A stretch of DNA of 64,000 nt, from contig NC_068990.1 in the NCBI RefSeq assembly GCF_001194135.2, forward strand, positions 78,570,139-78,634,138, in the 5' to 3' direction. Made by a program: the position numbers and the translations under genes. Positions 3,496 to 58,325 of the stretch are shown here, piece after piece; position 1 is the first letter of the stretch, and each line of letters begins with the position of its first letter. The stretch is from Octopus bimaculoides. Taxonomy: Eukaryota. The notes under the pieces are model-generated. The model ran no database searches, was not told the DNA's origin, and was given only the letters and a program-made list of their open reading frames with translations.

Positions 3496-3690
3496 AAGAA
3501 TAATCCTTTCTACTACAGGCACAAGGCCAGCAATTTTGAGGGAGGAGTGTCAGTTACATTATCCCTGTGCCACACTGGTACTTATTTTATTAACCATAAA
3601 TGTTATAATAGGTTAAACTGACCTCAGTGGCATTTGAACCAAGAACATAAAAACCCAGAAAAAATGCTGCCTAGCATTTTGCCCAATGAA
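3496..3690 (-). mobile_element. SINE family B, decayed
   Basis: Tail cctttctactacaggcacaaggcc and body match the other family B copies. Confidence 0.7.
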
Positions 3691-4702
3691 GAATAATGAT
3701 GATTATGATGATGATGATGATGATAAGAGTGAAGAAAAGACATACACTGAAAATGCAGACTGGATAAGAGACACCGAAGGATCCTACAAAAATTTACCAG
3801 AACAAGGATGGGAAGACATCACAACAGCAGAACTAAGAATGACACTCATGAGTGGAAATTCCCTGATAATGACAGGGTGTCAAACTTCTGGCTGGCATCA
3901 CGTGCGCACACAAAGAGTTCAGTTATTCAATGAAATTATGAGAGATCCTACAAAACACTTGAGAGTTATTACTTACCAACTCGTGAAGAATAATGAAACC
4001 AAATTTCCCCAAAACTATCAGCCCATAATATGTCTGTCTACCATGCATAAAATTTCAACATCAATCCTCATGGAGACAACATACAAGTTTAAGGAACAGA
4101 ACAATATTTTCCACAATGAACAAAAAGGGTGTCAACGAGGCTCATATGGATGCAAAGACCAACTCTTAATCAATCGTATGATCCTTAAGAACTGCCATAA
4201 CAAATGCAGAAATCTCAATTCCACATGGATTGACTATAAAAAGGCCTTTGACAGCATACCACATTCATGGATCTTGAAATCCCTGGATATCTTCAAAATT
4301 TCTCCTGTGATTTCAAACTTCCTGAAGCACATGTCAGTGCGGAATATGTTATACCACTCTAATGGAGTAGTGACCACAAAAAATATTAATATCAACTGTG
4401 GCACTTTCCAAAGTGACTCACTTTCACCTCTAATTTTTTGCATAGCCCTAATATCCCTTAAAAGTGAACTTAACAGAACAGGGTATGGGTATAAAACTGG
4501 TGACAAGAACATAAGCCATCTATTTTATATGAATGACTTAGAACTCTATGGCAAAGACAATAATAAGCTTGAAGGACTACTATGTACAGTGAAAGTATTC
4601 AGTGATGACAGTGGGATGAAATTTGGTCTTGATAAATGTGCCAAGGCCACTTTCCAGAAAGGGAAATTAAAGACCTCACATTCAGTAGTGTTTAGATGTT
4701 GA
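3686..4702 (+). pseudogene. Reverse transcriptase ORF remnant of the R4/Dong LINE
   Basis: NYQPIICL, EQKGC..GSYGCKDQLLI, WIDYKKAFDSIPH, GTFQSDSLSP, HLFYMNDLELY (YxDD mutated to YMND), GMKFGLDKCA. The first about 14 codons are microsatellite-derived. Confidence 0.9.
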
Positions 4703-9435: not shown

Positions 9436-10380
9436 GCCACCACCATTGTTTCAACAAGGAAGCTTTTAGCCTGTATATGGATACTCAGATTGCTAGAAAT
9501 AGCTACCATGACAGCCTTAAAACTATATTGAAAAGAGACAATTGGAAGAGGAGGAGGAGGGGTTAAACAACATTCCCATCGTTACCATAACAACAGAAAA
9601 CTGTCACCAAAACCAATTTTTGGGACAAACTCTGTAAATATTTATGTCAAGACAGCAGGGTCACAGAAACATTTAACCAACTCTACCAATGTGTGAGGGA
9701 GGGCGAGAGATAATGGGTGTGTATGAGAGGAAGAGAGAGACAGCATGTTTGTGTCAGAGAGAGAGAGAGAGAAAGAAGAGGTAGAAGGAAAGAAATCCTC
9801 CATCACCCCAGGTCACACATTTAACAAGAACCATTTGTTCAGAGAAAAGATAGAGTAAGACTTACAAAACACACACACTTGTCTGTCTGTATAAAGAGAC
9901 AATAGCACACACCCATCATTATACAGGCATCTGTGTACACACACACACACACATTTCTCTGTACACAGAAGAATCCCATATGTTGGCCAAGAAGTCTGAC
10001 AGGTTGTGTAAGAATGAGGGTGGGGGTGGAAATAGGAAGAAATGATGTTCATGCATTTCCATCAGCAATATGAATGAAATAAAATTTGAAATCCAAAATT
10101 TGGAGTCTCCCTCCATCTAACCATCATGAAATGATGTTGCTCAACATGCTAGAAACAACAGCCAAATCTCCTTGAAATCATAACAACACTCTTAAACAAA
10201 GAAAGATGCATTGAATAATACAGTCCCTTATAGACAAAGAGGTCATGGTTGAAAGTTCTTTGCTCACTTAGAACTGATCGAAGACTAAACAAAGCCAATG
10301 ACGATGCCTCTACATAGATGCTCAACATGCTAGAAATAGAAGCAAATCTCTCAAATTATTTTATTGTTTTTAACCTTTTT

Positions 10381-11063
10381 GTTGCCATATGCCAGTACCG
10401 CCTGACTGGCCATCGTAGGATTTTCGAGCGAGATCGTTGCCAGTGCCCCTGGACTAGCTCTTGTGCGGGTGGCACATAAAATACACCATTTTGAGCGTGG
10501 CCGTTGCCAGTACCACCTGACTGGCCTTCGTAGGATTTTCGAGCGAGATCGTTGTCAGTGCCCCTGGACTGGCTCTTGAGCGGGTGGCACATAAAATACA
10601 CCATTTTGAGCGTGGCCGTTGCCAGTACCGCCTGACTGGCCTTCATAGGATTTTCGAGCGAGATCGTTGTCAGTACCCCTGGACTGGCTCTTGAGCGGGT
10701 GGCACATAAAATACACCNNNNNNNNNNCCAGTACCGCCTGACTGGCCATCGTAGGATTTTCGAGCGAGATCGTTGCCAGTGCCCCTGGACTAGCTCTTGT
10801 GCGGGTGGCACATAAAATACACCATTTTGAGCGTGGCCGTTGCCAGTACCGCCTGACTGGCCTTCGTGCGGGTGACACATAAAAGCACCCACTACACTCT
10901 CTGAGTGGTTGGCGTTAGGAAGGGCATCCAGCTGTAGAAACTCTGCCAAATCAGATTGGAGCCTGGTGTAGCCATCTGGTTTCACCAGTCCTCAGTCAAA
11001 TCGTCCAACCCATGCTAGCATGGAAAGCGGACGTTAAACGATGATGATGATGATGATGATGAT
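10381..11063 (+). mobile_element. 3' UTR fragment of an RTE LINE with (GAT)n tail
   Basis: Nearly identical to the 3' UTR that follows the RTE ORF end at 20480-20926; ends GGAAAGCGGACGTTAAAC(GAT)n. Confidence 0.88.
10392..10865 (+). repeat. 115-bp tandem repeat within the RTE 3' UTR
   Basis: Units start at 10392, 10507, 10622, 10728 (after a gap) and 10843. Confidence 0.92.
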
Positions 11064-11529
11064 TTCTGTTGCGGATAATTTTGAAAATAATGAAGAACTT
11101 TATGAAATAATTATCTTTATGAAGCAAATGTCTGGGACAGGAATCAACCGAAAATTTTGATAGAAGGTTTTAATTTAAATAATTCTAAAACAAGAAATTT
11201 GAAACATAGAACCAAGGGTGGTCTTGGGTGGGTTGGTCTCAAAAGTGTTAAAGAAAATGTGGTTGTGTGGGTGAAGTGTGTCTAGGGTAAAAGATAGGTA
11301 GGGCATGGCTGGAAAGTATTTTTTGATCACAAGTCTATTCAAAGAAGGCTGGTTTAGGGCTAAATAACAACTTTATAGATCCAACTGAAGAGATCTGATA
11401 TCCTACCCAAACAGGGGTACAGTCTGTTCTGGGATACTTCACTCTACTTCCTCTCCATCTTTAGCAACAGGAGATCTAACACAATGCAATAACAATTGAA
11501 GTTTGGTAAGAATTGAAGCCATTGTGGCT

Positions 11530-12047
11530 AAATGTAATATTTGTTTATTCCTATTATTTTGAATCAAGCATGGATTATTTCATAGCCTTAAGATTTTGAA
11601 TCAAGCATGGATTGTTTCATAGCTTCAAGATTTTGAATCAAGCATGGATTATCTCATAGCTTCAAGATTTTGAATCAAGCATGGATTATCTCATAGCCTC
11701 AAGATTTTGAATCAAGCATGGATTATCTCATAGCTTCAAGATTTNNNNNNNNNNTCAAGCATGGATTATCTCATAGCTTCAAGATTTTGAATCAAGCATG
11801 GATTATCTCATAGCCTCAAGATTTTGAATCAAGCATGGATTATCTCATAGCTTCAAGATTTTGAATCAAGCATGGATTATCTCATAGTCTCAAGATTTTG
11901 AATCAAGCATGGATTATCTCATAGCCTCAAGATTTTGAAGATGTGATTGTTTATTTTGAGAATGACATTGTTGGGTAGGTGTAAGAGTTCAGATCTGGCT
12001 GATCTGAATATAAAAGAGGTAAAATATTAGGGCCAGCTAAAGGGTTT
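11530..12047. mobile_element. piggyBac-like MITE remnant carrying an internal satellite array
   Basis: The body after the array (gatgtgattgtttattttgagaatgacattgttgggtaggtg) matches 14401-14620. Right TIR is degenerate (GCTAAAGGG); left TIR not seen. Confidence 0.75.
11557..11937. repeat. 37-bp minisatellite, at least 10 copies (a gap hides the true number)
   Basis: Unit TTTTGAATCAAGCATGGATTATCTCATAGC(C/T)TCAAGA; GAA at 11561, 11598, 11635, 11672, 11709, then 11789, 11826, 11863, 11900. Confidence 0.95.
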
Positions 12048-13169
12048 ATGGTAGCCATGGCAGTGGTGGTGGTGGTAGTGGTAGCTAATTTGCATAGTTT
12101 TCCATTGTATTTAAAACAAGGCCCAGAATCTTTTCTTCAGTTACTAAACAGCAATTAATGTGGTGGTGGTGGTTGTATCAAAGTGGTGTTGCAGTCGTGG
12201 CTACAAGTCACTGATGTGGTGTGTCTCTTAGATGAGGCATTAAACCCCATTTGTTTCTCATCTCATAGTAATTAAACAGGAACAGAGAGAAAATAGCTCA
12301 ATGATTAAACACTGAATTAATTAAAAAGCAATTAATTCAATGATTTAGGACTGAAATTAAATTCTTTCTGCTTTCTGATGACAATGAAACATTTTGTGAT
12401 TAGTTTTACTTAATCTTGGCTTCAAAACATCCGTTTCAAACCCTACAAATCTTTGTAATAAAATTCATTTGTTCTGAAACAATTGCAAATGTATCAGGGC
12501 CTTTAAGGAGTTGTGCCTCACCAAAGTCTTTTATATAACAAGGCAAGTCATTCCATGTAAAGCAGACATTGTTTAGTCTTAAGGCAATCCTAACCGAGCA
12601 GAATTAAGATCCAAGACACTCCATACATGACCATTCCATTGTTTTAGGAGTATACAAAACTTATATGTCTAATGTACACTCTCCTTTGCTGATGTGATTG
12701 GGTGTGATTCGAGGGAGATTTGGCTGTTGCATCCAACAAGTTTAGTGACTATACAGGCTCCCTCAATGGTTCAGTATATAATAGAGTTAGTCAATCTAAT
12801 GGAATACTTGTGTCTCTGTGGGTTCTTCATTAAAGTAACAATACATTCCTCAAAGGGAGTGAAATGGCTTAAAGAAAAGTTGAAATTGCATTGCATTGTC
12901 AGTAGGAGTTTTATGTCTTCTATTATCTAATGTGTGTATAACCCCCACTTCTGGATAACAAGTAACTAACAATAAGGGGGAACAAGCGTAAAGAAAATGT
13001 CATTTTGTGACGAGGTATTAATAGTTAATTAGACATGGAAATGAAGAGTGGTGTTTGTTGGTGGCTAGGACAGGTTTCTATGGAAAGGAACAGTTAAATT
13101 TGATTTAAAAGAATAGGTGAAGGGCTTTGAGATTTAGCTTTGTGGAATTAAGTAGATAAGAGATAATTA

Positions 13170-14102: not shown

Positions 14103-14400
14103 AATATACAAAACAAAAATGTCACAGATAGCATATTGATGGCTTAAGAGTTTAGTAGAAAGCAGAAGTGCCACACAGTGAGATTGAACCCAAAACTATG
14201 AGATTAGAAAGTAAACTTTTACATCACATTGCAATATCTGTCCTCTGTTGTTGTTTAAACCTAATGAAAGGTGTTTGGCCATTTTCCAATATAACCTTCC
14301 TTTTTAAAGATGGTAGGCGGAGATTGAAGGAAATTTAGCTGTTATTTCTAGCATGCAATTACAAAGGCTCCCACAAGTTATGATCATGTGACCACCTTAA

Positions 14401-14620
14401 CCCTTTAGCATTCAGATTTTTCTGTCAAATATTAAGCTTATTTACTCACATTGTTTTGAATGAAATATGCATTATCTCATAACTTTGAAATTTCGATGAT
14501 GTAATTGTTTATTATTAGAATGACATTGTAGGGTAGGTGTGAGAAATCAGACCTGGCCAGTTTGAGCATAAAACAGGGAGAATATTTGAGTTGGATATGA
14601 TTGGTTTAAATGCTAAAGAG
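14401..14620. mobile_element. piggyBac-like MITE, complete
   Basis: TTAA at 14397-14400 and 14621-14624; TIRs CCCTTTAGCATT / AATGCTAAAGAG. Confidence 0.88.
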
Positions 14621-15721
14621 TTAACCTCACAAGCCATGTGCCATGCAATGACACTGGAATTTTGAAGTAAATTATTTTTCCAAAGAGGGGTAGTACCCAT
14701 GAAGTTTGTGGCCCCACCCAGACTAGTGAAGCCCAATGTAGTTGAAATGGTAGCCACCAGTACATAAACAAACCAAAAAAGATGTTGGTGATCTAGTTAG
14801 CAGTGTGATATTAGTTGGAGGAGAGGAAATATGTCAAAGATTATCTGAGATTATTTGACATGTCCTGTCAGAGAGAAAGAACTAGGACTTGAGTCTTTAA
14901 GACTGTTTTTAACTTTAGTTTAAATGTTAAGCCTGATGTTAACATTTAAACCAGCTGTCTCTCTCCCCCCACTCACTCAAAGTAAAAATGAGAACCTAAT
15001 GAGACAAGATGTTTCATTTGATCATTAATAATTAGACAGCAGTGGTGAGCAGCTTTGGATTAAAATCTGTTAAACATTCAGATTTTCGTAACATCATGTT
15101 TTAAAAAAAAACATCTCAAAAAGTTGTTAATCAAAAAACAAGGAAAAAATATGTTTTTCTTCTGCTTCCATATTTTGTTGTTTGTTTTATTATCAGAAAC
15201 AAAATTACTTTTGAAACAGCCTGGAGCTCTGTATGGCAGATATTCTAAAGAATATTCTCAGGATTTTCAAGGAAGGAATTTTTAGTTTCGTTTTATGAAA
15301 ATCAAAGATGGTGGAACAAGTCTTTTTTTCTGCTTTGAATATTTTTTTTTTTAATGGTGAATATATTAATGAAACAATAAATACATGACAATAATGATGA
15401 TGGCTCAGATGATAGAAATCTGGATTATATCATGTCCAAGGCTTCCTGTTTTTTAATGTTTCATTTTTACATTTTTTTACCTCATTTTCTTAGGATGAGA
15501 TATAAAGCAGTAACAGAGAACGCCCCCCCCCCACGACCACCACACACACACACCTCACTTGTATGAAATGGGAAAATAATATTATGAAATATAGTGAAGA
15601 CCAAACTTTTATTCATAATTCTGAATTGAAAGTATGGAGAAGTTGATTTTGATATTTGTTTCTTTGGGGTAGATAAAAAAAAAAGGATAAGTAACAAGAA
15701 TGGAAAGAGGCCTGCTATATC

Positions 15722-20072: not shown

Positions 20073-22300
20073 ATGATGATGATGATTGTTTCATCTTGAC
20101 AGATGACAGCTGTCCCATCAATACACTCACAACACCCCATCACACAGTACAATCACTCCATTGATGAGCCCTCAATACTTTTAAGACCAGCTGCTGACAG
20201 ACAGAGTTTAAAACACAAGTGATAGATATTATTCAAGTGTGGCGTGCAAGAGAGACGATTGCGCTGGTATGGACATGTGGTGAGAATGGAGGAGGATAGC
20301 TGCGTGAAAAAGTGCCACACCCTAACAGTTGAGGGAACCCGTGGAAGAGGTAGGCCCAGGAAGACCTGGGCTGAGGTGGTGAGGCAAGACCTTCGTACAT
20401 TGGGCCTCACCGAGGCGATGACTACTGACCGAGACCTTTGGAAATGTGCTGTGCGTGAGAAGACCCGGCAAGCCAAGTAAGATCGTTGCCAGTGCCCCTG
20501 GACTGGCTTGTGTGGGTGGCACATAAAAGACACCATTTCGAGNNNNNNNNNNNNNNNNNNNNNNNNNNNNNNNNNNNNNNNNNNNNNNNNCCATTTTGAG
20601 CGTGGCCGTTGCCAGTACCGCCTGACTGGCTCCTATAGGATTTTCGAGCGAGATCGTTGCCAGTGCCCCTGGACTGGCTTGTGTGGGTGGCACATAAAAG
20701 ACACCATTTCGAGCGTGGCCGTTTTCGTGCGGGTGACACGTAAAAGCACCCACTACACTCTCTGAGTGGTTGGCGTTAGGAAGGGCATCCAGCTGTAGAA
20801 ACTCTGCCAAATCAGACTGGAGCCTGGTGTTGCCATCCGGTTTCACCAGTCCTCAGTCAAATCGTCCAACCCATGCTAGCATGGAAAGCGGACGTTAAAC
20901 GATGATGATGATGATGATGATGATGATACATCTTTGCTGTTTGGAATCTGATTCTGAAGGAATGTTTTTGTGAACTAGCATATGTCTTTTAAGTCCAGAT
21001 ATTATCTTACAAGTTTTGTGACACATAACACAAATCGTAAGAAGTGGTTGTGGGTCTCAAGATCAGTACCTATCTGGGCATTACGATTTTCATGTGACTT
21101 CATATGGTTCACATATTCTGCTTTTGACAACAGAACACAATCACACACAATATATATCCAATGTTCACTGTTGATTACAGTTCCAATTGTTCCCTTGCAA
21201 CAGGCCCTTTTAAACTCAGAGTGCTAAATCATCTTTTCCTCCCAGGCATTGCAACCAGTCCTAACAGCACCTCTCCACTTGTTCCAATCCAGAACATCAT
21301 TTTTCCCCAATCACTTCTGTTCATATTTAGTTTCTTCAGGTTTTCCTTCACACAGTTTTTATACCTTTTCCTCGGCTTATGTTGTGGTCGTTTACCAGAG
21401 TTGAGCTCCCCATGAAAAAGATGTTTTGGCAATCGTTCATCTTCCATTCTATTAACATGTCCATCCCATCTCATTTGAACCAAGATAACATATTGTTCAT
21501 TCGAGCTACAATGTGCCAAGTGCAAAACTTGTGTATCTGGTATGAAAGATTCCCACTTGACTCCCAAGACACATCAGAGCTACTTTTGATGAAATCTCTC
21601 CGGCATTTTCATATGACACCTGAAAGTGGTTCACATCTCACTCAAATAGAGAAGTGCAGTCAATACACACGTTTTATAGACACTGTTTCATTGTCAGCTT
21701 TGGGGTTGTTCTAGGTCCTTTAGCAAAATCACTTCTGATTGCAAACCCAACACCACTTTTCCTTTTTTCTCCCTTTGGCTTCCCAACCCAGAATAATGTG
21801 AAACCTGCTGCTCTTTTGACAAGATGATCTTCATCTGAACATCTTGTTTCAGAAGAGCTGCAACATTAAGACACCATAGCTTCTTAGTTACAAGACCTGG
21901 TCTTCTTTTAAGCCTATCTGCTCGATCTAAAAGGGTTCTCACATTCCAACAGGTCAAGAGAAATCTCATTCCTTGTATACTTGTTATCATTGTTTATATC
22001 AATTCTTTGTTCATTCCTGCTCAATTCAACCACCGTTAGCTGCAGTAAACTAACCACCAGAGAAAAGACAGACAATTTTTAGTGCCCCTTTCCTAGCATC
22101 TTCCCAGTATATCCAGGTGACCGGTGTTCTCCTTAAAAGGGCTGTTCAGACACAAGATCCTCCACCAAAAACAATTCCTGTCCCTGTAAATATCTTAGCG
22201 ATGTTAAGATAAGAACCCTACCACATTATGTGCAGATCCGTAACTGTATGCTTCCAACCAGTCAAATCTGCATACGTCACCACACCCCTATCACTATGGG
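20073..22300 (-). mobile_element. Internally deleted RTE (BovB-like) LINE: 5' UTR and APE N-terminus fused to the C-terminus, with C2H2 fingers and an (ATC)n tail
   Basis: TCWNVRTLLDRADR (APE start, ORF 21694-21990) joins near 21697 to VYKTCVLTALLY..QMRWDGHVNRMEDERLPK..GELNSGKRP. Zinc-finger remnants at about 21092-21155, 20970-21032 and 20164-20224; tail at 20073-20087. Confidence 0.85.
20238..20926 (+). mobile_element. 5'-truncated RTE LINE nested inside the minus-strand RTE
   Basis: ORF 20244-20480 reads QERRLRWYGHVVRM..GRGRPRKTW..DRDLWK, followed by a repetitive 3' UTR and a (GAT)n tail. Confidence 0.92.
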
Positions 22301-24590: not shown

Positions 24591-24986
24591 AATAAGGGTT
24601 TCAAATTTTGTCACAAGGACAGCAACTTTGGTGGAAGGGACGAGTCAATTACATTGATCCCCAGTGTTCAACTGGTATTTATTTTATCGACCCTGAAAGG
24701 ACGAAAGGCAAAATCGACCTTAGTGGAATTTGAACTCAGAATGTAAAGACAGACAAATAATAATAATAATAATCCTTTCTACTATAAGCACAAGGCCTGA
24801 AATTTTGGAGTAGGGGGACTAGTTGATTACATCGACCCCAGTATTTCACTGGTGCTTATTTAATCGACCCCGAAAGGACGAAAGGCAAAGTCGACCTCAG
24901 TGGAATTTGAACTCAGAACGCAGTGATGGGTGAAATACTGCTAAGCATTTCGTCCAGTGTGCTAACGATTCTGCCAGCTCACTGCC
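24591..24986 (-). mobile_element. Two tandem SINE family B copies (24591-24755 and 24775-24986)
   Basis: Both contain gaaaggcaaa.tcgacct.agtggaatttgaactcagaa; separated and followed by (TAA)n. Confidence 0.88.
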
Positions 24987-25040
<54 letters not shown>

Positions 25041-25572
25041 GTTGTTTTAGAAACATTAAAAAAAGTCTCTAAGAAGTTGTGACATCCATGCTTTGCCAAA
25101 GAGTGATTTCAGTTACTATAGCAACCTTTGTTGGGTAAAACAGGAAACTTTCATTATCATATGAGGGGATCTTAGCTTTGTGAGCAAACAAAACAACTTT
25201 ACTTCAAATGAGGAACTAGGTGGGGGTGATCTTTCCAGACCAGTTGCAAATTTAAGTTGTGTAAGAAACCATGGGGCCAAATTTGTGCTCAGAAAAACAA
25301 TCAGTCTTTTAGTAATGAAGAGAATTACAACTTAAATTACTATTTTGCATCTTCAGGTTTGAACAATTTTTCACAGGTTTTGTTAGCAGAAAGTTTTAAA
25401 TTTGAATGCAGAAGGCTTTTCTTCTGTTCTGAGTTCAAATTCTGGCTTTCATCTTTTCGGGATTCATAACATAAGGACCAGTCAAGCACTGTGGTCGACG
25501 TAATAAACTTACCTCACCCCCAAAATTTGAAATTATTATTATCATCATCATCATCATTATCATTATTATTGA

Positions 25573-25995
25573 GGTGGCGAGCTGGCAGAATCGTTAGCAT
25601 GACAGGCTAAATGCTTAGTGGTATTTCATCTGTCTACATGTTCTGAGTTCAAATTCTGTTGAGGTCGACTTTGCCTTTCATCCTTTTTTGGGGGGGGGGG
25701 GTGATGAATTAAGTACCAGTGAAACACTGGGGTCGGTGTAATCAACTCACCCCCTCCCCAAAATGGCTGCCCTTGTGGCAAAATCTGAAACCAAAATCCT
25801 AAGCATGCTGGACAAAATGTTTAGTGGTATTTTTTCCGTCATTGCATGCAGAGTTCAAATTTTGCATGGGTCAACTTTGCCTTTCATTCCTTCAGGGTCA
25901 GTAAAATAAATACCAATTGAGTGCTGGGGTCGATGTATTTGACCAGCNNNNNNNNNNCCCCCCAATTTCAGGCCTTGTGCCTATCATTAAAAAGG
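25573..25995 (+). mobile_element. Two tandem SINE family B copies (25573-25790 and about 25797-25995)
   Basis: Head GGCGAGCTGGCAGAATCGTTAG, B box GAGTTCAAAT, GCCTTTCATCC domain, and (TTA)n before and after. Confidence 0.88.
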
Positions 25996-30000: not shown

Positions 30001-32029
30001 TAAATAAAAATTATTCAATTGTTTTGCCATATTAATCTGGCTGAACAGGTCTTGTTCTCTAAATCTTGCACTGGTTTCAGTTATTTGACTGTGGTCATGC
30101 TGGAGCAACACTTTCTAGTGTTCGGTTGATCAAACAGACCTCACTACTCATTTTAGCCTGGTATTTATCAATTTTTATCAGTTAAACTGCTAATTTACAA
30201 TACGTAAAGAAACACAACAAATCAAGATATTTTCTAGTCTTCCTTTTGATGTTAGCATGGGTGTTTATGATTAGGAAAAGATTTAGTTGGAATATATCTT
30301 TTATTTAACTCATGAAAAGAACAATCATAGATCAAAAAAGAATGACTCTAAACAGATGATGGCCCATCAAAGAAAAACTGCAGACCAAAAAAGAGGACTC
30401 TAAAGAGATGATGGCCTATCAATAAATAATCATAACCCACAACAATAGAGGGAAAATTTACATAATTTCTTCAAACAACATAGATTTAAGAGATCCACTA
30501 AGCACAATAGACCTCAGTTTTGTTTCTTTCATTTATTTTCTATTCTATCATTATGAATGTAATGTCACACATCTTTTTAATAAGTACTCTGCTCACTTTC
30601 AAGATCTCAACTGCTTCTTCTTTTCTATTCTGATACAAAATAATGACTACAGGAATAGCCAAGTGCACCTCTTCAACACCTAAAATAACTGTCACAAGAG
30701 CAAAACAGGGGTACATGCAAAATTATATGATTCACTCAGCTGGTCTGTGTGGAGTCCTTTTCACAGTGTGCAATATGTTGGTTTTTGCACAAGTATTTAC
30801 AAAAAAAAAAAAAAAAAAAAGAACTATGTGTGTATGTGTGTGTGTACATGCATATGTATGTGTAGAGTTGGATGAAGACCTACTGATGACCTAACCCCAC
30901 CCCAACAATTATGTCCCATTATCCTTCATCTGTCCTATTGTTGAGATATAAAGACATAAAGAATGTTGAATGTGAAAGAAGAGGTAATAAAATACAGGTG
31001 TTTCTTTTTTTCCAGGCTATCTGTCTGACCAAATCTCACAACTATATTAAATATATCCTGGTCTTAAATTCTATTTAACACTAATTAGCAAATCAATGAG
31101 TAATTCATTTACTTATAATCAGAGCAACAAGATAAAAATGCAAATCTTCAACACACGTGCGTGTTTAATGGTTTAATCTCACACACACACACAAATGTTA
31201 ATGCATGGGTCATATGTATCAGCATACATAAACCTAGTCAAACATTAACTGATAAAACATTCAATAAATGAAAGTATGAAGGGGTGCGGGGTGTGGGGTA
31301 AGAAAGCAGGTAAACAGTTGCCATCGACTAGATTCCACTCACAAGTTGCTGGTCAACCTCGTATGTAGACAGATGTATTGTTATCTTTTTAGATTAGGAG
31401 GATAAAAAAATAAAGGAAAATTTGATTTTGGTGCATTTAACCAATTAGTGGGTTAATTAGAGGAAATTTAACATTAAATTGGAAATGAAATTATATGGTG
31501 GTTTTAGTCTTTGTTTCGTTTGTGATTTTACAATAGTTGAAAAAAAAATTTTAAAAAGGGTTGAGCAAAAGACCATAAATTTCTAAGGGATTAAGTTGAT
31601 TAATGGTAATTATTTCATTGATGAAAGATAAAGGTGACCACTGGTCATAATCAAAGTCAGAACAGGCAGTGGACAGAAGTGTGTGGAAGGTATTTATGAA
31701 GATGCTCAATCAATTCTAAAAAGAAGAAAAACACTGCTCAGCAGGCAGCCTGATCCTTGGGTACCTCTACTCAGTAGGCAGCCTGATCCTTGGGTACCTC
31801 CCCTCTATGTTGGCCCACATGGGTAATAAAAAAAACAGATCCTTGGGTACCTTAAGTGAAGTTGACTCTGTTGATGTTGTGTCAGATCAGGTCACTTCTT
31901 ACCAATGTTTTCCATCAATAAGTTTTTATTGTTCCATCAATAAGTTTTTATTGTTCCATCAATAAGTTTTTATTGTTCCATCAATTCCATCACTTTACTG
32001 CAAAGACACACCTGTTGTAAAAAGCACGA

Positions 32030-32237
32030 TCCAAACGTAATCGATGCCAGGCCCACCTGAGTGGCTCCTGTGCCAGTGGCACGTAAAAAGCACCCACTAC
32101 ACTCTTGGAGTGGTTGGCATTAGGAAGGGCATCCAGCTGTAGAAACATTGCCAGATCAGATTGGCTCTCCAGACCTCAGTCAAACCGTCCAACCCATGCC
32201 AGCATGGAAAACGGACGTTAAAAGATGATGATGATGA
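32030..32237 (+). mobile_element. RTE-type 3' end with (GAT)n tail
   Basis: GCACCCACTACACTC..GGAAGGGCATCCAGCTG..GGACGTTAAAA(GAT)n. Confidence 0.8.
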
Positions 32238-32587
32238 TTGTCATAAATCTTCTTTTTCCTGATTTTGAGGGAGCCACAACAAAGATGTTCAACCTACTAA
32301 AAATAAAGGGAAAATCTACCTCAAATAACATTGAACCATCTTAAAAAATGGACACAATGAATATCATACTCCTAGGTACACTAGTGCTTAAAGAAAAAGA
32401 AAAGGAAGAAACAGAAGAGCCACAACATGGTGGAGATGAGTTTGATCATCTGACTGATCAGGTTTGATTAATCAGTGGCTTGATTGATTAGGACTGACTT
32501 AGTGATTACCAACAACAACCATTTTTAATGTTGTCAAGAATATTAAAATGACTTGTTTATTAAATATATTTACATATTTTTTCAATA

Positions 32588-34268: not shown

Positions 34269-34816
34269 GAATTAGACATATTCACACTGTAGGATATAGC
34301 CAAAAGGAAAGAGTGATGGACAGATATATCACAGGACTAGTGAATTGTATGATTTTATTTTAATGTTTGATGTAGTCAATAAATTTATGAAAGAAAACGA
34401 AAATAGTGTTAGTCTGTAGTGACCTTTTATACCTAGTGTATGTGTGTGTGAGAGAGAGAGAGAGAGAGATGTTTCTGGGCTGAATGACAAGAAAAGGAGT
34501 TTGTTGTAGTTAAGCAGAAAAAAGAAGTGAAAGGAAGTGGGAGGAAAGAAAGGACAAACCTGACACTGAGTTGTTGTTGTTCAGCATTAAAATAAATAAT
34601 GTAATGGGAGGAGGAGGAGACATGGACAGTGAAGAATTACATGTCTCTGATACAACACTGTATTAGTAACAAGATATTAGGAAATACCAGTTGACTGTCA
34701 ACTGTGACCAGTATTGATACCTCATTAGCCATCAGCTGCAATTGTTTATTATCAACAACATATGGAAAAAAATGAAACAAAATTAATGAAATGTGGTTTT
34801 GTTTTGGTCAATTTTA

Positions 34817-35270
34817 ACCCCTTTTAGCATTTAAATTATTCTGTCAAATGTAATGCTTATTTACTGACACCCTTTTGATTTGAAACCTAATTGCTAGATA
34901 TTCAGTCTGACAACATGACTGAACCATCATAATTTCACATGATTGATCTATTAATTGACCAATCAGTGTGAGGCTGTGGGTGTGATATGGTTTTCTTGAA
35001 CATTCTAGAATTTGGCTTCTGGTCCCCTATAAAAACTGCTTGGAGTGCAGACAGCCAAGGACCTGTTGCCATGGAAATTTACACAGTTGACTTTGTATAT
35101 TTTTGGACTGACCACATCTTGTCACACAGATGGCTTTCATTAATTTCAGAGTGACAGTTTATTTTTAGAATGAAATTGTTGGGTAGGTATAAGAAGCAGG
35201 ATCTGGCCAGGTTGACCCCAAAACAGGTAAAATATCTTGCCTGGATATGGCTGGTTTAAATGCTAAAGTG
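34817..35270. mobile_element. piggyBac-like MITE with about 230 bp of extra internal sequence
   Basis: TTAA at 34813-34816 and 35271-35274; ends CCCCTTTTAGCATT / AATGCTAAAGTG. Arms match 14401-14620, which lacks the middle segment. Confidence 0.75.
34959..35078 (+). promoter_or_regulatory. Heat-shock-type promoter cassette: CCAAT, HSE, TATA, X-box-like motif
   Basis: CCAAT 34959-34963; TTCttGAAcaTTCtaGAA 34993-35010 (four alternating nGAAn units); TATAAAAA 35028-35035; GTTGCCATGGAAAT 35065-35078. Confidence 0.55.
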
Positions 35271-36803
35271 TTAAACATAGAAATATTAACCAGACAGAAG
35301 CTAGGCAGGTGGAAAGCTTTGGTTCTATCAATATACAACTTGTACCAAATATTACAATAATTATTACAACACAAGGGATGTAATAAGCCATAAAGATCAG
35401 TTGTCTACAGATGTAAACATTGACCATTCTATGCTCAAACTGACCATTCTACCTGATCAAAACTCAACTCATAAAAGAGGCTTGTATCAATGCCATTTTA
35501 TAATTTTTTTTTTTTGTCATTAACAAACAACTTCACAAATCTCATATCTTGCTCTGAAGCCAACTCTTGTAAGCCAGGCTTATCAATTCCATGCTAATTC
35601 ACCAACTTTTGCAACCATTTTCACATCTAAAACTTTCAGTCAAAAGAGAAAAGAAAAAAACAATTTTTTTTCATGGTGGCAGCTTTGAAAGTAAAAACCA
35701 ATTTTCTATAGTGGTTGCTTTAAATATCTCCTTGGTTCTTTTTTCTTTCCTTTTTTTTCCCATTTCTACCTAGCAACTAACAGCTAAAGAACTGGCATAA
35801 GCTAGAAGAAATGCTAAAGGCTAAAGGAATTCATTGCAGACATTTGATGTATGTTGAGATATTAATGGTTTCTTGCACAACAATGAAGAAACCTTAGTTT
35901 TAGGAAAGGAATTTACAAAGATTTTATGTCTTTTAAAATGTATATGAGCAAACATGAAGCAATTGAAACAGAGGTCGCAAGAATTTACTGCTGTTGACCA
36001 GACATTAAAACAGAAATATCTTCTATGGGTACCACTTCTTTTTTTTGTTTTTTTTTTTGAAAAGGAAGAGAGATGAAAGGGTGAAAATTCAGAATCTCAG
36101 AAAATTCTAATCAATAGGAGAGTTTGCAAAGTTTTAGTCCTTGTTGTTTGTCTGAGAATGATGAAAGACAGAAAGAAACTTCAGAGTATCGTCTTAATTT
36201 ACAGTTAATAAATAACATTAATTTTTATCTACCTCAAGGATTTTTGTACACTGTCTTTGGAACTGTAAAATATGATATCAAACGTGTATGACATGAAATA
36301 TTTGATACACACACACACACACACACAAATGCAAATATGTCTAATAAACACATCTAGTACGGTTTTCTTCTCTTGGTACAAGTTCTATGAAGGTAAGAAT
36401 AATTGGAGAACTTTTTACATGACATAAAGGTGAAGGGAGGAGAGGATTCTGTAGAGGAGTTCTGATCATGTGATCAGGAATTTAATCTTAATAACAAAAT
36501 CCTTATTTTGTGCTCCTCACTAATGTAGCCCTTCTCATCACAGTCTTCACTAAAGCAAGGAAAATATCACATCCAGTTTCATATGCAAATGTCAACATTT
36601 GTAAAAGCCACCCATGCAGATTAATGGAAGTAAGATGTGTGCTTTTAATTTAAATGGATACATACATAGAAACGCACACACACATATACACACATGCACA
36701 CACATATATACATACATGTATTTTCTCTCCCTTTCTCTCTCTCTATATATATATGTATATGTATATATACGAGTAAATGGACAAATAAAAGAAGGGCGCT
36801 CAA

Positions 36804-42730: not shown

Positions 42731-44757
42731 CATGTGTGTATATATATTTTAGTAAAACTGAGCTTAGAATGTACGTGTACATTGAAATTACAACCTCGAA
42801 ACTAAATTTATTTCTCCCTGACAAGCTGAAAAGATAGCTTCAAGCTTTGAAGCAGCTGTATGATAAAGAAGCCATCTTCTCTAAATACAACTGGAGCCAA
42901 GCAGCAACAGCGGTGATGGCAAGAGTAAAATAAGGTCTTTGTTTTAGACTTTGGCAGAGTAACCAGAAGTAAAGAGATATGCCAACAGCATTACAAGTGC
43001 TGCAGTGACAAACTGGAATCTATCCTTGGCTCTAACACAAGACTATGTTACATAGATGTAGCACCTTAATAATCAAGCTAAATTCTGTTTCTTTTTTCTT
43101 CTTCTTTTCTTTTTCTTTCTTTTTGCTTGTTTTAATGTTTATTTTTACAACTGCTAGCAATTCCGTTTGTTCGGGTGTTAATCCTAAATATACTTATGTA
43201 GGGCAAGCACTGTAATGTAGTCTGGATCTCAAGGGATAAACTGTTTCAATGAAATAAATATTTTGTTAATGCTTACTTTGTGCGAATGCCATAGAGTGGG
43301 TGGTAGCCATGGAAATTGACACAAGTTGTGAATTTAGTCTTGGAGAAATTTCAACGCTGCAACATCTAACACACACACACACACACACTTGAAATAAAAG
43401 ATTTTAAAAAATGAAAAAAAAACAAAACAAAAAAACAAGGCAACAAAACCATGAAATCTGCTCAAGGGTCAGACAGGCAGCCTGTAGCAGGGAGTGAACC
43501 ATCTACAATACGTATGGCTAATAAGATAGCATCTTAATACTTAAAATCCAAATATGAGGAAGCATTCCTTTATTATATTCACAACAAACAAAAACATCTA
43601 CAATACCGACCAGCAAGAACCGTTTCTTTCATCACAAACCTCTGGGCCCAGCAGAGAGTATCATTAGAAAGAGGAGTTAAAAACACAAGGGCTAACCTGG
43701 ATTTCACAGATGGCTATTTATTAAAAGGTTTGATGACTTAAATACAAGGTTTACTCATTAAATTATGTGTTATAGATTGGAACAAAAGACTTAGACATTT
43801 AAGAAAAGGACAACTTTAATTTGAGAGAGACAGCTAAGAAAGAAGCTCCCACATGGTCGTGTGTTGTTAAGATTAGAACAGAAGGGCATTCAAGAATTTG
43901 TGGTGTCACCTGGAGCAATTTGGAACCTTAGCAAACTGAGCTTTGAAGAGTGTAATTTAAGGCTAAAATTCAAAAATTTCCAACAAAATACTGATGCACA
44001 AACATTCTCCAAGCATTCCACATTCAATATTCAGACTTTCTGCCACAGCTGTCATTGCTGCCATCACGGTCATTGTTGTCAATGGCTTAAATGTTAAAGA
44101 ATATAAAGAAAGAAATCAAGTTCATTAGAGACAAAGTCTGGGTAAATTCTTGTTCAATAGATTTTGGCAGTGATCTGTTTGGCCCACTGTATTAATCCAA
44201 ATAGGAACACAAGGATTAATACAAATCCGATGTGCCGTTATGCTTCTATGTTGTCACACATGATTCTAACTGATACAATAACCAAGTCCATCTTAAATAG
44301 GACACATAATGTAGTTCTAAATAACATTAAAAAAGACTGGATGACTATGGATGGAATGTCTTTGATCAAAGGCCTGCTTGCTTGGCCTGGATGACACAAT
44401 ATCTTTACTCTCGGTAGAACATCTTAAGTGTAAAATCTTCAGTCTTTCGAGAGTAACTGACTTACAATACATTATGTCATCCTTATACACTGGGCTTGGG
44501 GAAAAAGATAAGTCAACAGGATGCTCAAGGCTGGAACGTCTTTGATCATACATCTACCCTTTCAGGTATTTCTAACTCACTTGTCACTCCACTTCTCTCA
44601 CTGACCATACTGTCTCCATTCCAGCCTGGGTCCCACACTAACCCTTACATTCAGTCCTTCCTTCAAGAATTTCTGACCTACACATGTTTTTGCAACTATT
44701 CAAGAGAAATGTTAACCATCCAACCCATGCCAGTATGGAAGGAGAACATTAAGTGAA

Positions 44758-44790
<33 letters not shown>

Positions 44791-45686: not shown

Positions 45687-45848
45687 TCATATCATCATGG
45701 ATTGGATGATTTGACTGAGGACTGGCAAGCCAGATGGCTGCACCAGGCTCCAGTTTGAGCTAACAATGTTTCTACAGCTGGATGCCCTTCCTAATGCCAA
45801 CCACTCCGAGAGTGTAGTGGGTGCTTTTACGTGCCACCGGCACAAAGG
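45687..45848 (-). mobile_element. RTE-type 3' UTR fragment
   Basis: CAGCTGGATGCCCTTCCTAATGCCAACCACTCCGAGAGTGTAGTGGGTGC. Confidence 0.8.
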
Positions 45849-45849
45849 C

Positions 45850-47944: not shown

Positions 47945-49142
47945 TGAGGAAGTAACCAAAAGAAATTGGAATTTTGCAGTTGACAATATACAACAACTTT
48001 ATCGCATCACTACTGCTTAAATCTCTCTGAGAGATTTAGAAATGTTATTTCTAATTTTGGTAACCAGTGAATATATTTCACTGTATTTATATATGTTTGC
48101 GAGAGGTTGACAGACTTCTTCAACCAGCTGGTCATGCTACTTCAGGCTGATGACAAGCAAAGACTCAGAAACATGTCCCTGAATGCTGGCTAGGTTGGGT
48201 GGAAGGGTTTGTCTCCCCCTCACAAACATAAGGACTCAGTAAATGTGTCAAGGCCGACAGGAAGCGGTCCAGCTTCCTAGGGCTAAACAGCAGTAGTATA
48301 TTCCCTTATTGGGATTGTCACATTAATCGCCTTCAAAGTATTCTCCATTTGAAGCAATGTTTCAGTCCAGGCATGTTTTCTACTATTCAAAGCAATGCTG
48401 GAACTCTTGTGAAGTGATGCCTTTTAACGCCTCCGTCGCTTTTTTTTTCTTCACCTCTTCCACATCTGCAAATTCCGTAGTACCACCTTTTATCACCAGT
48501 GATGACCTTCAAAAAAAGGTCTGGATCAACTTCCAGCTGTTCTTTCAGTCGTGACTGTTTTCGATCTTCTGTGATTAAGTGAGGCACAAATTTTGCTGCA
48601 ACTCTTTTCATTCGCAATTCCTCGCTCAGAATTTGTTGGCAGCAGCTCCGGGAAACACCAGTCATATCAAAAAGTTCATCAATCGTTTGGTGATGGCTGT
48701 CCAAGATTAGTTCATGAATTTTCCTGACGTTTTCATTTGTCCAGGAGGCTGACAGGCATCCTGAATGAAGTTAGTCTTCAAGTGACATGTGACCATTCCC
48801 AAAGCATGGAAACTACTCATAAACTTGTGTTTTGCTCATGGCTGCATCCTTGTAAGCTGTTTGGAGCATGACAACTGTTTTGGCTGCTGTTTTCCCCAGC
48901 AGAAAACAGAATTTCACAAAAGCACGCTGTTCTTTTGTTTCAGCCATTGCAAAAATCGATGAACAAGGGAGAAGCACTGCAAAACAAAGATGCACCACGT
49001 AACAGTATGACCCCACTGGACAACACCAGTCGGCAGACTGATGCCTGAGGGTCACGTCAAGTGGTTTCTTGTGGTAGAAGCCTGAAATACAATGGGTTTG
49101 TCCCACAGAGAACGTTTCTGGTTAATTTTGGGTACCCCTTTG
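47945..49142 (-). mobile_element. Mariner transposon, internally deleted and non-autonomous
   Basis: EQRAFVKFCFLLGKTA..SKTQVYE (HTH) and KRVAAKFVPH..VITGD, joined near 48474 to FADVEEVKK..GEYFEGD*. TA at 47943-47944 and 49143-49144 within a TACA microsatellite. Degenerate TIRs match at about 16/27. Confidence 0.85.
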
Positions 49143-56430: not shown

Positions 56431-58130
56431 ACTCATAATAAATCATGTTGAGTCTTGGAAGGGTCATTATGCCAATAACAATAACAACACATACACTGGT
56501 TCAATTTCCTTTCTTTAGTGTTAGTGAATTGGTTAAATATTAAATAGAGAGGCACATGAATGTACACACACAACCACACACACACACATACTCTTTTTTT
56601 TACTCTCACTCTTTCTTTCTCTTGTAAACAACCACACAGGCATTAGACTAACTCTGAGACAGACTCAAAGCAGACCTTGAAGAGAGACAGCAGGTCATTG
56701 ATGAGGCCAAGAATAGTGATGAAAGGAGGACTTTAACAAACAAACATCTGATTTAATCAATACATTAAACAAATGATTGATTAGTTGGGCAATTAGATAT
56801 ATCACTGATTGACTACCAATAAAGAAGTGGTATTGAACCAGTGCATGTCTTTATTATTATTTGTGTAATGACCCTCTCAAGACAAGATTTATTCAACAGA
56901 CAAATTCACATCAAGAATCTTGCAAACCAAACACAAAAACGTCATGAAATATCAATTTAAGCAAAGATTCAGACAGAGATTATTGTCGTTACCAACAATA
57001 ACAGTATCCTATTCTATCCAGCTTTGTTGTTATAATTAGAAATGATGCAACGAGGACCGAAACTTTGGCAATACCAACTTTTAACAAATTGTTAACTCAC
57101 AAATTAACCCTTTCTATGTTTTGTGCCGAGACTAATGAAACAATTCTGGTGAGAGCTGAACTTAGTTTTTAGGCATTTCAGAGCTGAATCACCAATTTCT
57201 TTCTTAAGTTCTTTAGTAAATATCAATGTAGATGTATCAATATGGCTCTTTACATAAACCACACAAGATTGAGTCACAAGAGGAGAAAGTACCACAAATC
57301 GATTTCAACCACATCACAGAAGCAAGCTAATGAGGGGTCACACAACTTGCTAAAAGTAACAAGTAAATCACCCTTAAGTTACACCTTAATGTCTTAAAAA
57401 GGGAAAAACATTGTATACATACACTATGTCAAGAAACATTGGAATGAACAGGGCTAGAACACTTTTGGTCACAGGTTTTCTCAACTGGGGTTAACTTTGA
57501 GTTAAAAAAAACAACATAAGTATGAAAAAAGCAGCTTTAAATTGCTAATGGATATGTTAGCAACACTGAATGTGTGTGTGTGTTTACTTACACCCCTACA
57601 CATTTATTTTTGTGTGTGAGTGATACAGACTCTCTCTCTCTCTCTCTCGTGTGTGTGTGTCTGTGTGTGTGATGCAGGCTCCCTCTCTCGTGTGTGTGTC
57701 TGTGTGTGTGATGCAGGCTCCCTCTCTCGTGTGTGTGTGTGTGTGTGTGTGTGTAAAGTCTTTATTGTTTATCTCTAAAATGTTCACTGATGCATTAAAT
57801 GGACAATCAGTGAACAGGCTGCAGATGTCTGATGTAATGTTTTCAGAGAAAGACATAGCCAAACACCAGTGGTCCAATAAAATCCATGAATGAGAGAGAC
57901 AGGTAATTGAAGCAAAAATTGTGACCTGGGCAACAGGCTGGAAAAAAGCATTAAATATTACAAAGAAAGTTAGCACAGAGTCTTTTTTCAGTTTTTCTAT
58001 TTACTTTGTTTATTAATAGTAAACTGTGACTAACCCAAATATAATAACAAACATTTCTATGTATAATATCAAGTAAAATTGCTTGGTCATAGCAAAGAAA
58101 ATAACAACTTGGAGGTATTTCATTTAAATT

Positions 58131-58325
58131 CATCATCATCATTGTTTAACGTCCACTTTCCATGCTGGCATGGGTCGGACGGTTTGACTGAAAACTGGTA
58201 AGCTGGGGAGCTGCACCAGGTTCCACTCAGATCTGGCAAGGTTTCTATGGCTGGATTCCCTTCCTGATGCCAACCACTCCAAGAGTGTAGTGGGTGCTAT
58301 TTACATGCCACTGGCATCAGCCATG
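58131..58325 (-). mobile_element. RTE-type 3' end
   Basis: (CAT)n TGTTTAACGTCCACTTTCCATGCTGGCATGGG through GTGTAGTGGGTGC. Confidence 0.8.

Follow-up and report, generated by a model that had tools for sequence, protein, structure and literature searches.

A predicted heat-shock promoter cassette in one interrupted piggyBac-type MITE copy of Octopus bimaculoides

In a stretch of 64,000 nucleotides from Octopus bimaculoides (GCF_001194135.2, NC_068990.1, positions 78,570,139 to 78,634,138; hereafter referred to as the window), one MITE copy of the piggyBac type contains about 234 bp of extra DNA in which a CCAAT box, a perfect four-unit heat-shock element (HSE) and a TATA box follow each other in the manner of an HSF-type promoter. 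Among the 12 members of the MITE family present in 186 kb of octopus DNA, this cassette is a one-off at a single locus and not a feature of the family. We favor the explanation, to which we assign a probability of roughly 0.45, that the extra DNA is a later, one-off secondary insertion of promoter-bearing sequence into an old MITE and that it is predicted to bind HSF. Should the cassette work, it would represent a ready-made stress-inducible promoter in cephalopod mobile DNA, and the idea of a heat-shock response rewired by TEs, as developed for Helitrons and ONSEN, would reach the molluscs. The main value of the locus lies in providing the 234 bp as a query with which a one-off can be told from a family.

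A piggyBac-type MITE family and its interrupted copy

We compared the window with six loci from Octopus vulgaris (122 kb, GCA_951406725.2), which had been located through hypothetical proteins matching an ORF in the SINE-like repeat of the window, amounting to 186,187 bases in total, and used a family profile that was built from the copies in the O. vulgaris loci. Of the 12 family members, the window contributes three and O. vulgaris nine. The family consensus has 229 bp, TTAA flanks, a terminal inverted repeat that starts with CCCTTTAG (consensus CCCTTTAGCATT.A.A.) and a central unit of about 37 bp. When up to three mismatches are allowed, TTAACCCTTTAGCATTTAAA has three matches in the window as compared to 0.02 expected. 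Flanking TTAA is present on both sides of the short copy in the window (14397-14400 and 14621-14624) and also in the O. vulgaris copies L004 and L005b. Characteristics of the piggyBac superfamily are TTAA duplication and terminal inverted repeats of 12-19 bp starting with C[C/A/T][C/A/T][T/G/A][T/A/G][T/G/A] (PMC5381638), and recently active piggyBac families and MITEs have been reported in O. vulgaris (PMC13282606). The TTAA duplications, the CCCTTT... terminal inverted repeat and the occurrence as short, non-coding, multi-copy elements in two octopus species led us to assign the family to the piggyBac type, and, as judged from these features, the long copy is a genuine member of it. The first-pass annotation had thus correctly recognized the host as a piggyBac-like MITE.

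The family shares with other MITEs of the piggyBac superfamily the TTAA duplication, terminal inverted repeats that measure 13-19 bp and begin with CCCTTT, a length of about 230 bp, the lack of coding capacity and its abundance. Like the coral CMITE family, which is linked to a piggyBac-like transposon (PMC2872659), it also occurs in tandem arrangement: in locus L005 (O. vulgaris OX597840.1, 6931-7320), two MITE copies are arranged head to tail with an overlap of a few bases and form a tandem dimer. It differs from its relatives in that no autonomous piggyBac partner, i.e., a DDE_Tnp_1_7 transposase sharing the MITE ends, was found in the window or the six O. vulgaris loci, and in that the copy described here is interrupted by foreign DNA. 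None of the ORFs in the family has relatives.

The ends of the long copy (Table 1) form a perfect 13-nt inverted repeat (34823-34835 pairs with 35255-35267), and its arms are 77-81% identical to the corresponding parts of the short copy (34814-34885 with 14397-14465 and 35157-35274 with 14507-14624). With nhmmer, the family model covered 34818-34881 and 35145-35275 and nothing in between, and both arms proved to be collinear on this one model. The middle is composed of the extra DNA, about 233-234 bp long, and a diverged, split MITE central unit. Excision of about 234 bp returns the long copy to the canonical length of 228-229 bp and to an end-to-end alignment with the consensus, and the long copy is therefore one canonical MITE plus about 234 bp. 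The excision score is flat from a join of 34881 with 35115 to a join of 34902 with 35136, which places the left side of the junction anywhere between 34881 and 34902 and its right side anywhere between 35115 and 35136. The earlier statement that this segment is missing from the plain copy at 14401-14620 holds, and a case that had been named as refuting the promoter reading, two unrelated MITE fragments that flank ordinary DNA, is ruled out because the arms are collinear and jointly restore that length. Replacement of the MITE centre is likewise ruled out, as the length arithmetic corresponds to a pure addition of 234 bp.

In the third, degenerate family member in the window, the 37-bp central unit (ATTTTGAATCAAGCATGGATTATCTCATAGCCTCAAG) has been multiplied to about ten tandem copies (11556-11939), which are interrupted by a gap of 10 N. 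In this MITE family, it is the centre that is structurally unstable in general and that appears to be a hot spot of structural change. Divergence from the consensus amounts to 12-16% among family copies (JC 0.13-0.18) and to about 15% in the arms of the long copy (JC 0.16). On the timescale established for O. vulgaris, a JC of 0.09 corresponds to about 25 My and a JC of 0.2 to about 56 My (PMC13282606). When the divergence is read on this scale, the MITE family existed before O. vulgaris and O. bimaculoides separated (13-33 My), in agreement with its presence in both genomes.

Table 1. Features of the interrupted MITE copy, its extra DNA and the other family members in the window (positions refer to the window)
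Feature	Position	Strand	Remarks
Long MITE, element proper	34818-35270		453 bp; TTAA-bounded, read from sequence
Left TTAA target-site duplication	34814-34817	.	read from sequence; identical to right TTAA
Right TTAA target-site duplication	35271-35274	.	read from sequence
5' arm of long MITE	34818-34881	+	nhmmer, family model positions 11-74, E=7.7e-11
Terminal inverted repeat, 5' arm, CCCCTTTTAGCATTTAAAT	34818-34836	+	
Non-canonical middle	34882-35144	+	outside family-model coverage
3' arm of long MITE	35145-35270	+	nhmmer, family model positions 104-237, E=9e-32
Terminal inverted repeat, 3' arm, ATTTAAATGCTAAAGTG	35254-35270	+	
Left inverted terminus of extra DNA, TCAGTCTGACAACATG	34902-34917	+	13/16 complementary to 35115-35130
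Right inverted terminus of extra DNA, CATCTTGTCACACAGA	35115-35130	+	pairs with 34902-34917
CCAAT box, extended NF-Y context, GACCAATCAG	34957-34966 (CCAAT at 34959)	+	about 70 bp upstream of TATA box
GT/CACCC-box-like run, TGTGGGTGTG	34975-34984	+	between CCAAT box and HSE, read from sequence
Perfect four-unit HSE, TTCTTGAACATTCTAGAA / TTCttGAAcaTTCtaGAA	34993-35010	.	sole match in window
TATA box, TATAAAAA	35028-35035	+	17 bp downstream of HSE; only TATAAA in element
X-box-like site, GTTGCCATGGAAAT	35065-35078	+	12/14 to GTTGCCATGGCAAC; overlaps ATG at 35071
27-codon ORF, MEIYTVDF...	35071-35154	+	starts gccATGg; no relatives
55-aa frame	34987-35154		spans HSE, contains 27-codon ORF
Canonical short member	14397-14624 including both TTAA; element 14401-14620 (220 bp)	+	full-length family-model match, E=1.7e-67
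Third, degenerate member	11530-12048	+	family-profile match

Promoter motifs in the extra DNA and their expectation by chance

By definition, an HSE comprises three or more alternating nGAAn units (Perisic 1989, a definition also used in PMC6927752), and the site in the extra DNA consists of four perfect contiguous units in which none of the 12 core positions deviates. The CCAAT box lies 27 bp upstream of the HSE, which in turn is located just upstream of the core promoter. The usual distance between a TATA box and the transcription start amounts to 28-33 bp, and on this basis a start is predicted near 35057, i.e., 29 bp past the first T. Relative to this position, the CCAAT box is found at about -99, the GT/CACCC-like run, which we take to be a GT/CACCC box, at about -80, the HSE at -65 to -48 and the TATA box at -30, and all of these promoter motifs point rightwards. 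The first-pass annotation had placed the CCAAT box, the HSE and the TATA box at 34959, 34993-35010 and 35028, respectively; all three are present with positions within 1 bp, and the promoter order and spacing it had claimed, that of an HSF-type Pol II promoter, was confirmed as well. The X-box-like site it had listed is also present but lies about 10 bp away from the 35055-35060 originally given, and it is weak: 0.29 matches of this quality to the palindromic RFX consensus (GTTGCCATGGCAAC) are expected per window, i.e., it is at chance level.

As judged from dinucleotide shuffles, a four-unit HSE is expected 0.01 times per window. Allowing one mismatch adds one further site at 48711; apart from the four-unit HSE, this site (48711-48728, TTCATGAATTTTCCTGAC), with three perfect units and a fourth containing one mismatch, is the sole HSE-like one in the window. 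For the extended CCAAT motif RRCCAATCAG, two occurrences in the window compare with 0.65 expected. A TATAAA 5-40 bp away in the right orientation is encountered at 4.4% of random window positions, and a TATAAA combined with a CCAAT within 100 bp on the opposite side at 0.8%. Multiplying the expectation for the HSE by the latter value results in a joint expectation for HSE, TATA box and CCAAT box of about 8e-5 per 64-kb window.

These numbers bear directly on the possibility that the extra 234 bp are nothing but junk, be it filler or a dead TE fragment, with an HSE, a TATA box and a CCAAT box that came together accidentally in AT-rich DNA and that are neither bound nor transcribed. We consider this unlikely, yet it has to be taken seriously. 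Even at about 8e-5 per window, chance alone would produce a handful of such clusters in a genome of about 2.7 Gb, the size that we assume for octopus, and the present one was picked from a scan of many windows. A chance origin is also in line with the chance-level X-box-like site, with the single copy of the cassette in 186 kb and with the absence of any gene, Pfam domain or heat-shock signature motif nearby. On the other hand, about 80 bp accommodate four independent promoter elements whose order and spacing are canonical, the HSE is flawless and the CCAAT box is embedded in an extended NF-Y context; moreover, a second four-unit HSE is absent from the 186 kb of octopus DNA, and only three further HSEs, each with three units, occur there.

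Origin of the extra DNA

The inverted termini of the extra DNA (Table 1) sit at the breaks in MITE homology. Their cores, TGACAACATG (34908-34917) and CATCTTGTCA (35115-35124), are complementary by count at 9 of 10 positions. These termini suggest a second mobile element or a solo-LTR-like piece, although we estimate that about one such pair is expected per 500 bp by chance. A complete LTR usually carries a poly(A) signal, AATAAA or ATTAAA; the former is absent from the whole element and the latter from the middle, and a clean target-site duplication flanking the extra DNA was not detected at offsets of 228-239. Neither the 4-6 bp target-site duplication nor the poly(A) signal in R that would be typical of a solo LTR was thus found. 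The lack of a clean target-site duplication speaks against the secondary insertion that we prefer. We also considered a nested hAT-type MITE, which would have CAG..-type terminal inverted repeats flanked by an 8-bp target-site duplication, but while the termini CAGTCTGACAACATG/CTGTGTGACAAGATG match at 12 of 15 positions, the 8-bp flanks TAGATATT/ATGGCTTT do so at only 3 of 8; a nested Tc1/mariner element was ruled out by the absence of TA flanks.

No second copy of the middle was found by blastn (word size 7) or nhmmer (--max) in the 186,187 bases of the window and the O. vulgaris loci, which are a tiny sample in which a family would escape detection unless its copies numbered tens of thousands or more. 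In the absence of a second copy in the 186 kb, the middle cannot be assigned to any TE family. Eleven of the 12 MITE family members in the 186 kb are of the short form, the middle with the cassette being confined to the copy at 34818-35270, which speaks against a spread of the cassette by the MITE family; nor did this DNA give any sign that the cassette or the composite element has ever moved. The first-pass annotation had spoken of a mobile cassette and had proposed searching for the insert inside other MITE arms or on its own; neither form of recurrence was encountered in this DNA. The exact patterns of the terminal repeat and of HSE plus TATA box likewise had no matches in collections of metagenomes, bacterial and archaeal genomes and viruses, and the sequence strings of the cassette and the family terminal repeat had none in the full text of papers.

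All 25 core motif positions of the cassette are intact. If the middle were neutral and as old as the arms, this would have a likelihood of about 2% (0.855^25), which favors a later arrival of the middle or constraint. In view of the TG...CA-like inverted termini, the most likely source of the secondary insertion that we prefer would be a further small mobile element or a piece resembling a solo LTR; filler or captured DNA appears to be less likely. On the basis of its sequence, the cassette would be expected to bind HSF. HSF trimers would occupy the HSE and, together with NF-Y and TBP, would allow transcription to begin near 35057. The transcript would then cross the 3' arm of the MITE and run into flanking repeat-rich DNA, encountering neither a meaningful ORF nor a poly(A) signal for about 1 kb. 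This would yield a read-through RNA that is non-coding and heat-inducible, or else the cassette would act locally as an enhancer. A reasonable match to a 5' splice site, CAG/GTAAAA, is located downstream of the predicted start in the MITE 3' arm (35216-35224), and a read-through transcript could be spliced there as an exon. The third copy has GAG/GTAAAA at this position, and the short copy lacks the site.

A different origin, which we regard as improbable, is that the long form is ancestral. The 453-bp element would then be the relic of an internally deleted, autonomous piggyBac-like precursor that has retained the CCAAT-HSE-TATA promoter of its transposase gene, a short leader and the first 27 codons, and the 229-bp family would have emerged from it by one further deletion. 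If true, the transposase would have been heat-inducible. Indeed, 14 nt past the predicted start, at a distance of about 255 nt from the 5' end, there is an ATG whose Kozak context is strong (gccATGg, 35071), a placement that resembles the piggyBac layout, and its frame has no stop before the 3' arm junction is reached. A deletion would likewise leave no target-site duplication and a flat optimum of the junction, as observed. A precedent is provided by Helitron1_CE, in which HSEs are located upstream of a heat-induced Rep-Helicase gene (PMC6927752), and piggyBac families have been active recently in O. vulgaris (PMC13282606).

Several observations are at variance with an ancestral long form. 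Neither 5.8 billion proteins nor 1.84 billion cluster representatives include a credible relative of the 55-aa frame, and a transposase remnant is absent. The word-indexed protein search with the frame, which yielded no homologue, is weak negative evidence: exact look-up retrieved none of seven window ORFs from the collection, in which the window's own assembly is not indexed. The sole match to the frame in an exhaustive phmmer search (P0121, E=2e-14) was dismissed as spurious, i.e., as a sum of weak per-repeat matches. P0121 is a predicted protein of 1057 aa with 17 near-identical repeats of about 61 aa, and calls for caution with repeat-rich matches. An open frame of 55 codons is unremarkable in itself: a search of 701 bp (34700-35400) met with 15 ORFs of 20 aa or more that lie wholly or partly in this interval. 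Furthermore, the arms of the long copy are not more divergent than those of other members, and 25 intact motif positions are unlikely at such an age.

The 234-bp middle could be the native, HSF-driven 5' region of an octopus transposon, be it the piggyBac-like parent of the MITE or a small LTR or TIR element. We give this reading little credence as well. It would imply a heat- or stress-inducible cephalopod mobile element that can drop complete CCAAT-HSE-TATA promoters into new loci, and we know of no earlier case of an HSF-driven mobile element of this kind in molluscs.

Least probable of all in our view is that MITE and promoter move as a unit, or that a captured hsp promoter is now spreading and seeds heat-inducible promoters near genes: both terminal inverted repeats and the TTAA flanks are retained and the spread of HSEs by TEs is documented for Caenorhabditis Helitrons (PMC6927752), but none of the other 11 family members contains the middle, it is without a second copy in 186 kb from two species, the original MITE insertion alone accounts for the TTAA flanks, and the 5' terminal inverted repeat of the long copy bears two 1-bp insertions relative to the family consensus.

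Comparison with known systems and genomic surroundings

The contribution of TEs to gene regulation in cephalopods is a matter of debate. Annotation assigns about two-thirds of the O. vulgaris genome to repeats (PMC13282606). HSEs borne by TEs are already known from Caenorhabditis Helitrons and Arabidopsis ONSEN, and the octopus locus adds a single predicted case. In Caenorhabditis, Helitrons carry HSEs in thousands of copies, often as arrays, with support from ChIP and RNA data (Garrigues et al. 2019, PMC6927752). The octopus element resembles them in being DNA transposon sequence with a canonical HSE that would potentially recruit HSF and make nearby transcription heat-responsive. In contrast to the Helitrons, where the HSE is a family feature, the octopus family shows a single HSE, restricted to one of 12 copies and accompanied by its own TATA and CCAAT boxes. 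A TE family that spreads HSEs would have them in its consensus or in many copies, and none of the 11 other members has one in the small sample of 186,187 bases.

The LTRs of ONSEN/ATCOPIA78 in Arabidopsis (e.g., PMC13602373) are similar to the octopus cassette in that they represent a compact TE-borne promoter with an HSE just upstream of the core promoter, and the inverted termini of the extra DNA may be of the LTR-like TG...CA type. The ONSEN LTRs differ in that they flank a coding retrotransposon and recur throughout the genome, whereas neither a partner LTR, a target-site duplication of 4-6 bp, a poly(A) signal nor a second copy was found here. A third similarity concerns the proximal promoters of the hsp70 type. 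In inducible promoters of this type from Drosophila and vertebrates, an HSE is located up to about 20 bp upstream of the TATA box with a CCAAT box further upstream, and the cassette shows the same proximity of HSE and TATA box and the same upstream CCAAT box. Unlike them, it is not followed by an hsp coding sequence or a recognizable gene, i.e., neither a chaperone gene nor any other recognizable gene is in a position to be driven by it.

In this respect, the first-pass annotation was accurate in stating that no heat-shock ORF follows the cassette. The longest ORFs downstream of the predicted start comprise 27-37 codons, and the signature motifs scanned for, those of HSP70, HSP90, HSP60 and DnaJ, are absent from every frame of the 64 kb. 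The first poly(A) signal is located at 36004, about 1 kb on, with no AATAAA or ATTAAA between the predicted start and that position. A Pfam search of eight ORFs across the window, three of which lie within 10 kb of the element, did not detect any domain other than a reverse-transcriptase fragment at 3686-4702, and an Rfam search returned nothing relevant at gathering thresholds or with E values up to 1.

The window is a gapped draft sequence, rich in repeats, with a GC content of 37% and an observed-to-expected CpG ratio of 0.25. The reverse-transcriptase fragment just mentioned is of the LINE type (Pfam RVT_1, E=6e-19). Identity to its best relatives reaches only 50-64%, and the ENA contigs to which these relatives led, L001 and L002, are not octopus and produced 0 HSPs with the window. 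A SINE-like repeat with a (GAT)n tail is abundant (10356-11075, 20322-20936, 32026-32250, 44714-44790, 45727-45849, 58130-58316, and others) and contains internal tandem duplications of 115 bp at 10392-10867. ORFs running through this repeat match "hypothetical proteins" of O. vulgaris and O. bimaculoides, and these sequence matches suggest that the respective gene models are repeat-derived. Finally, a large nested inverted-repeat structure at 24659-25946 flanks (ATA)n and (ATC)n microsatellites. Its 155-nt arms (24873-25027 and 25532-25686) are 80% complementary, further arms are located at 24819-24973 and 25792-25946, and the structure may represent a foldback or other inverted-repeat element.
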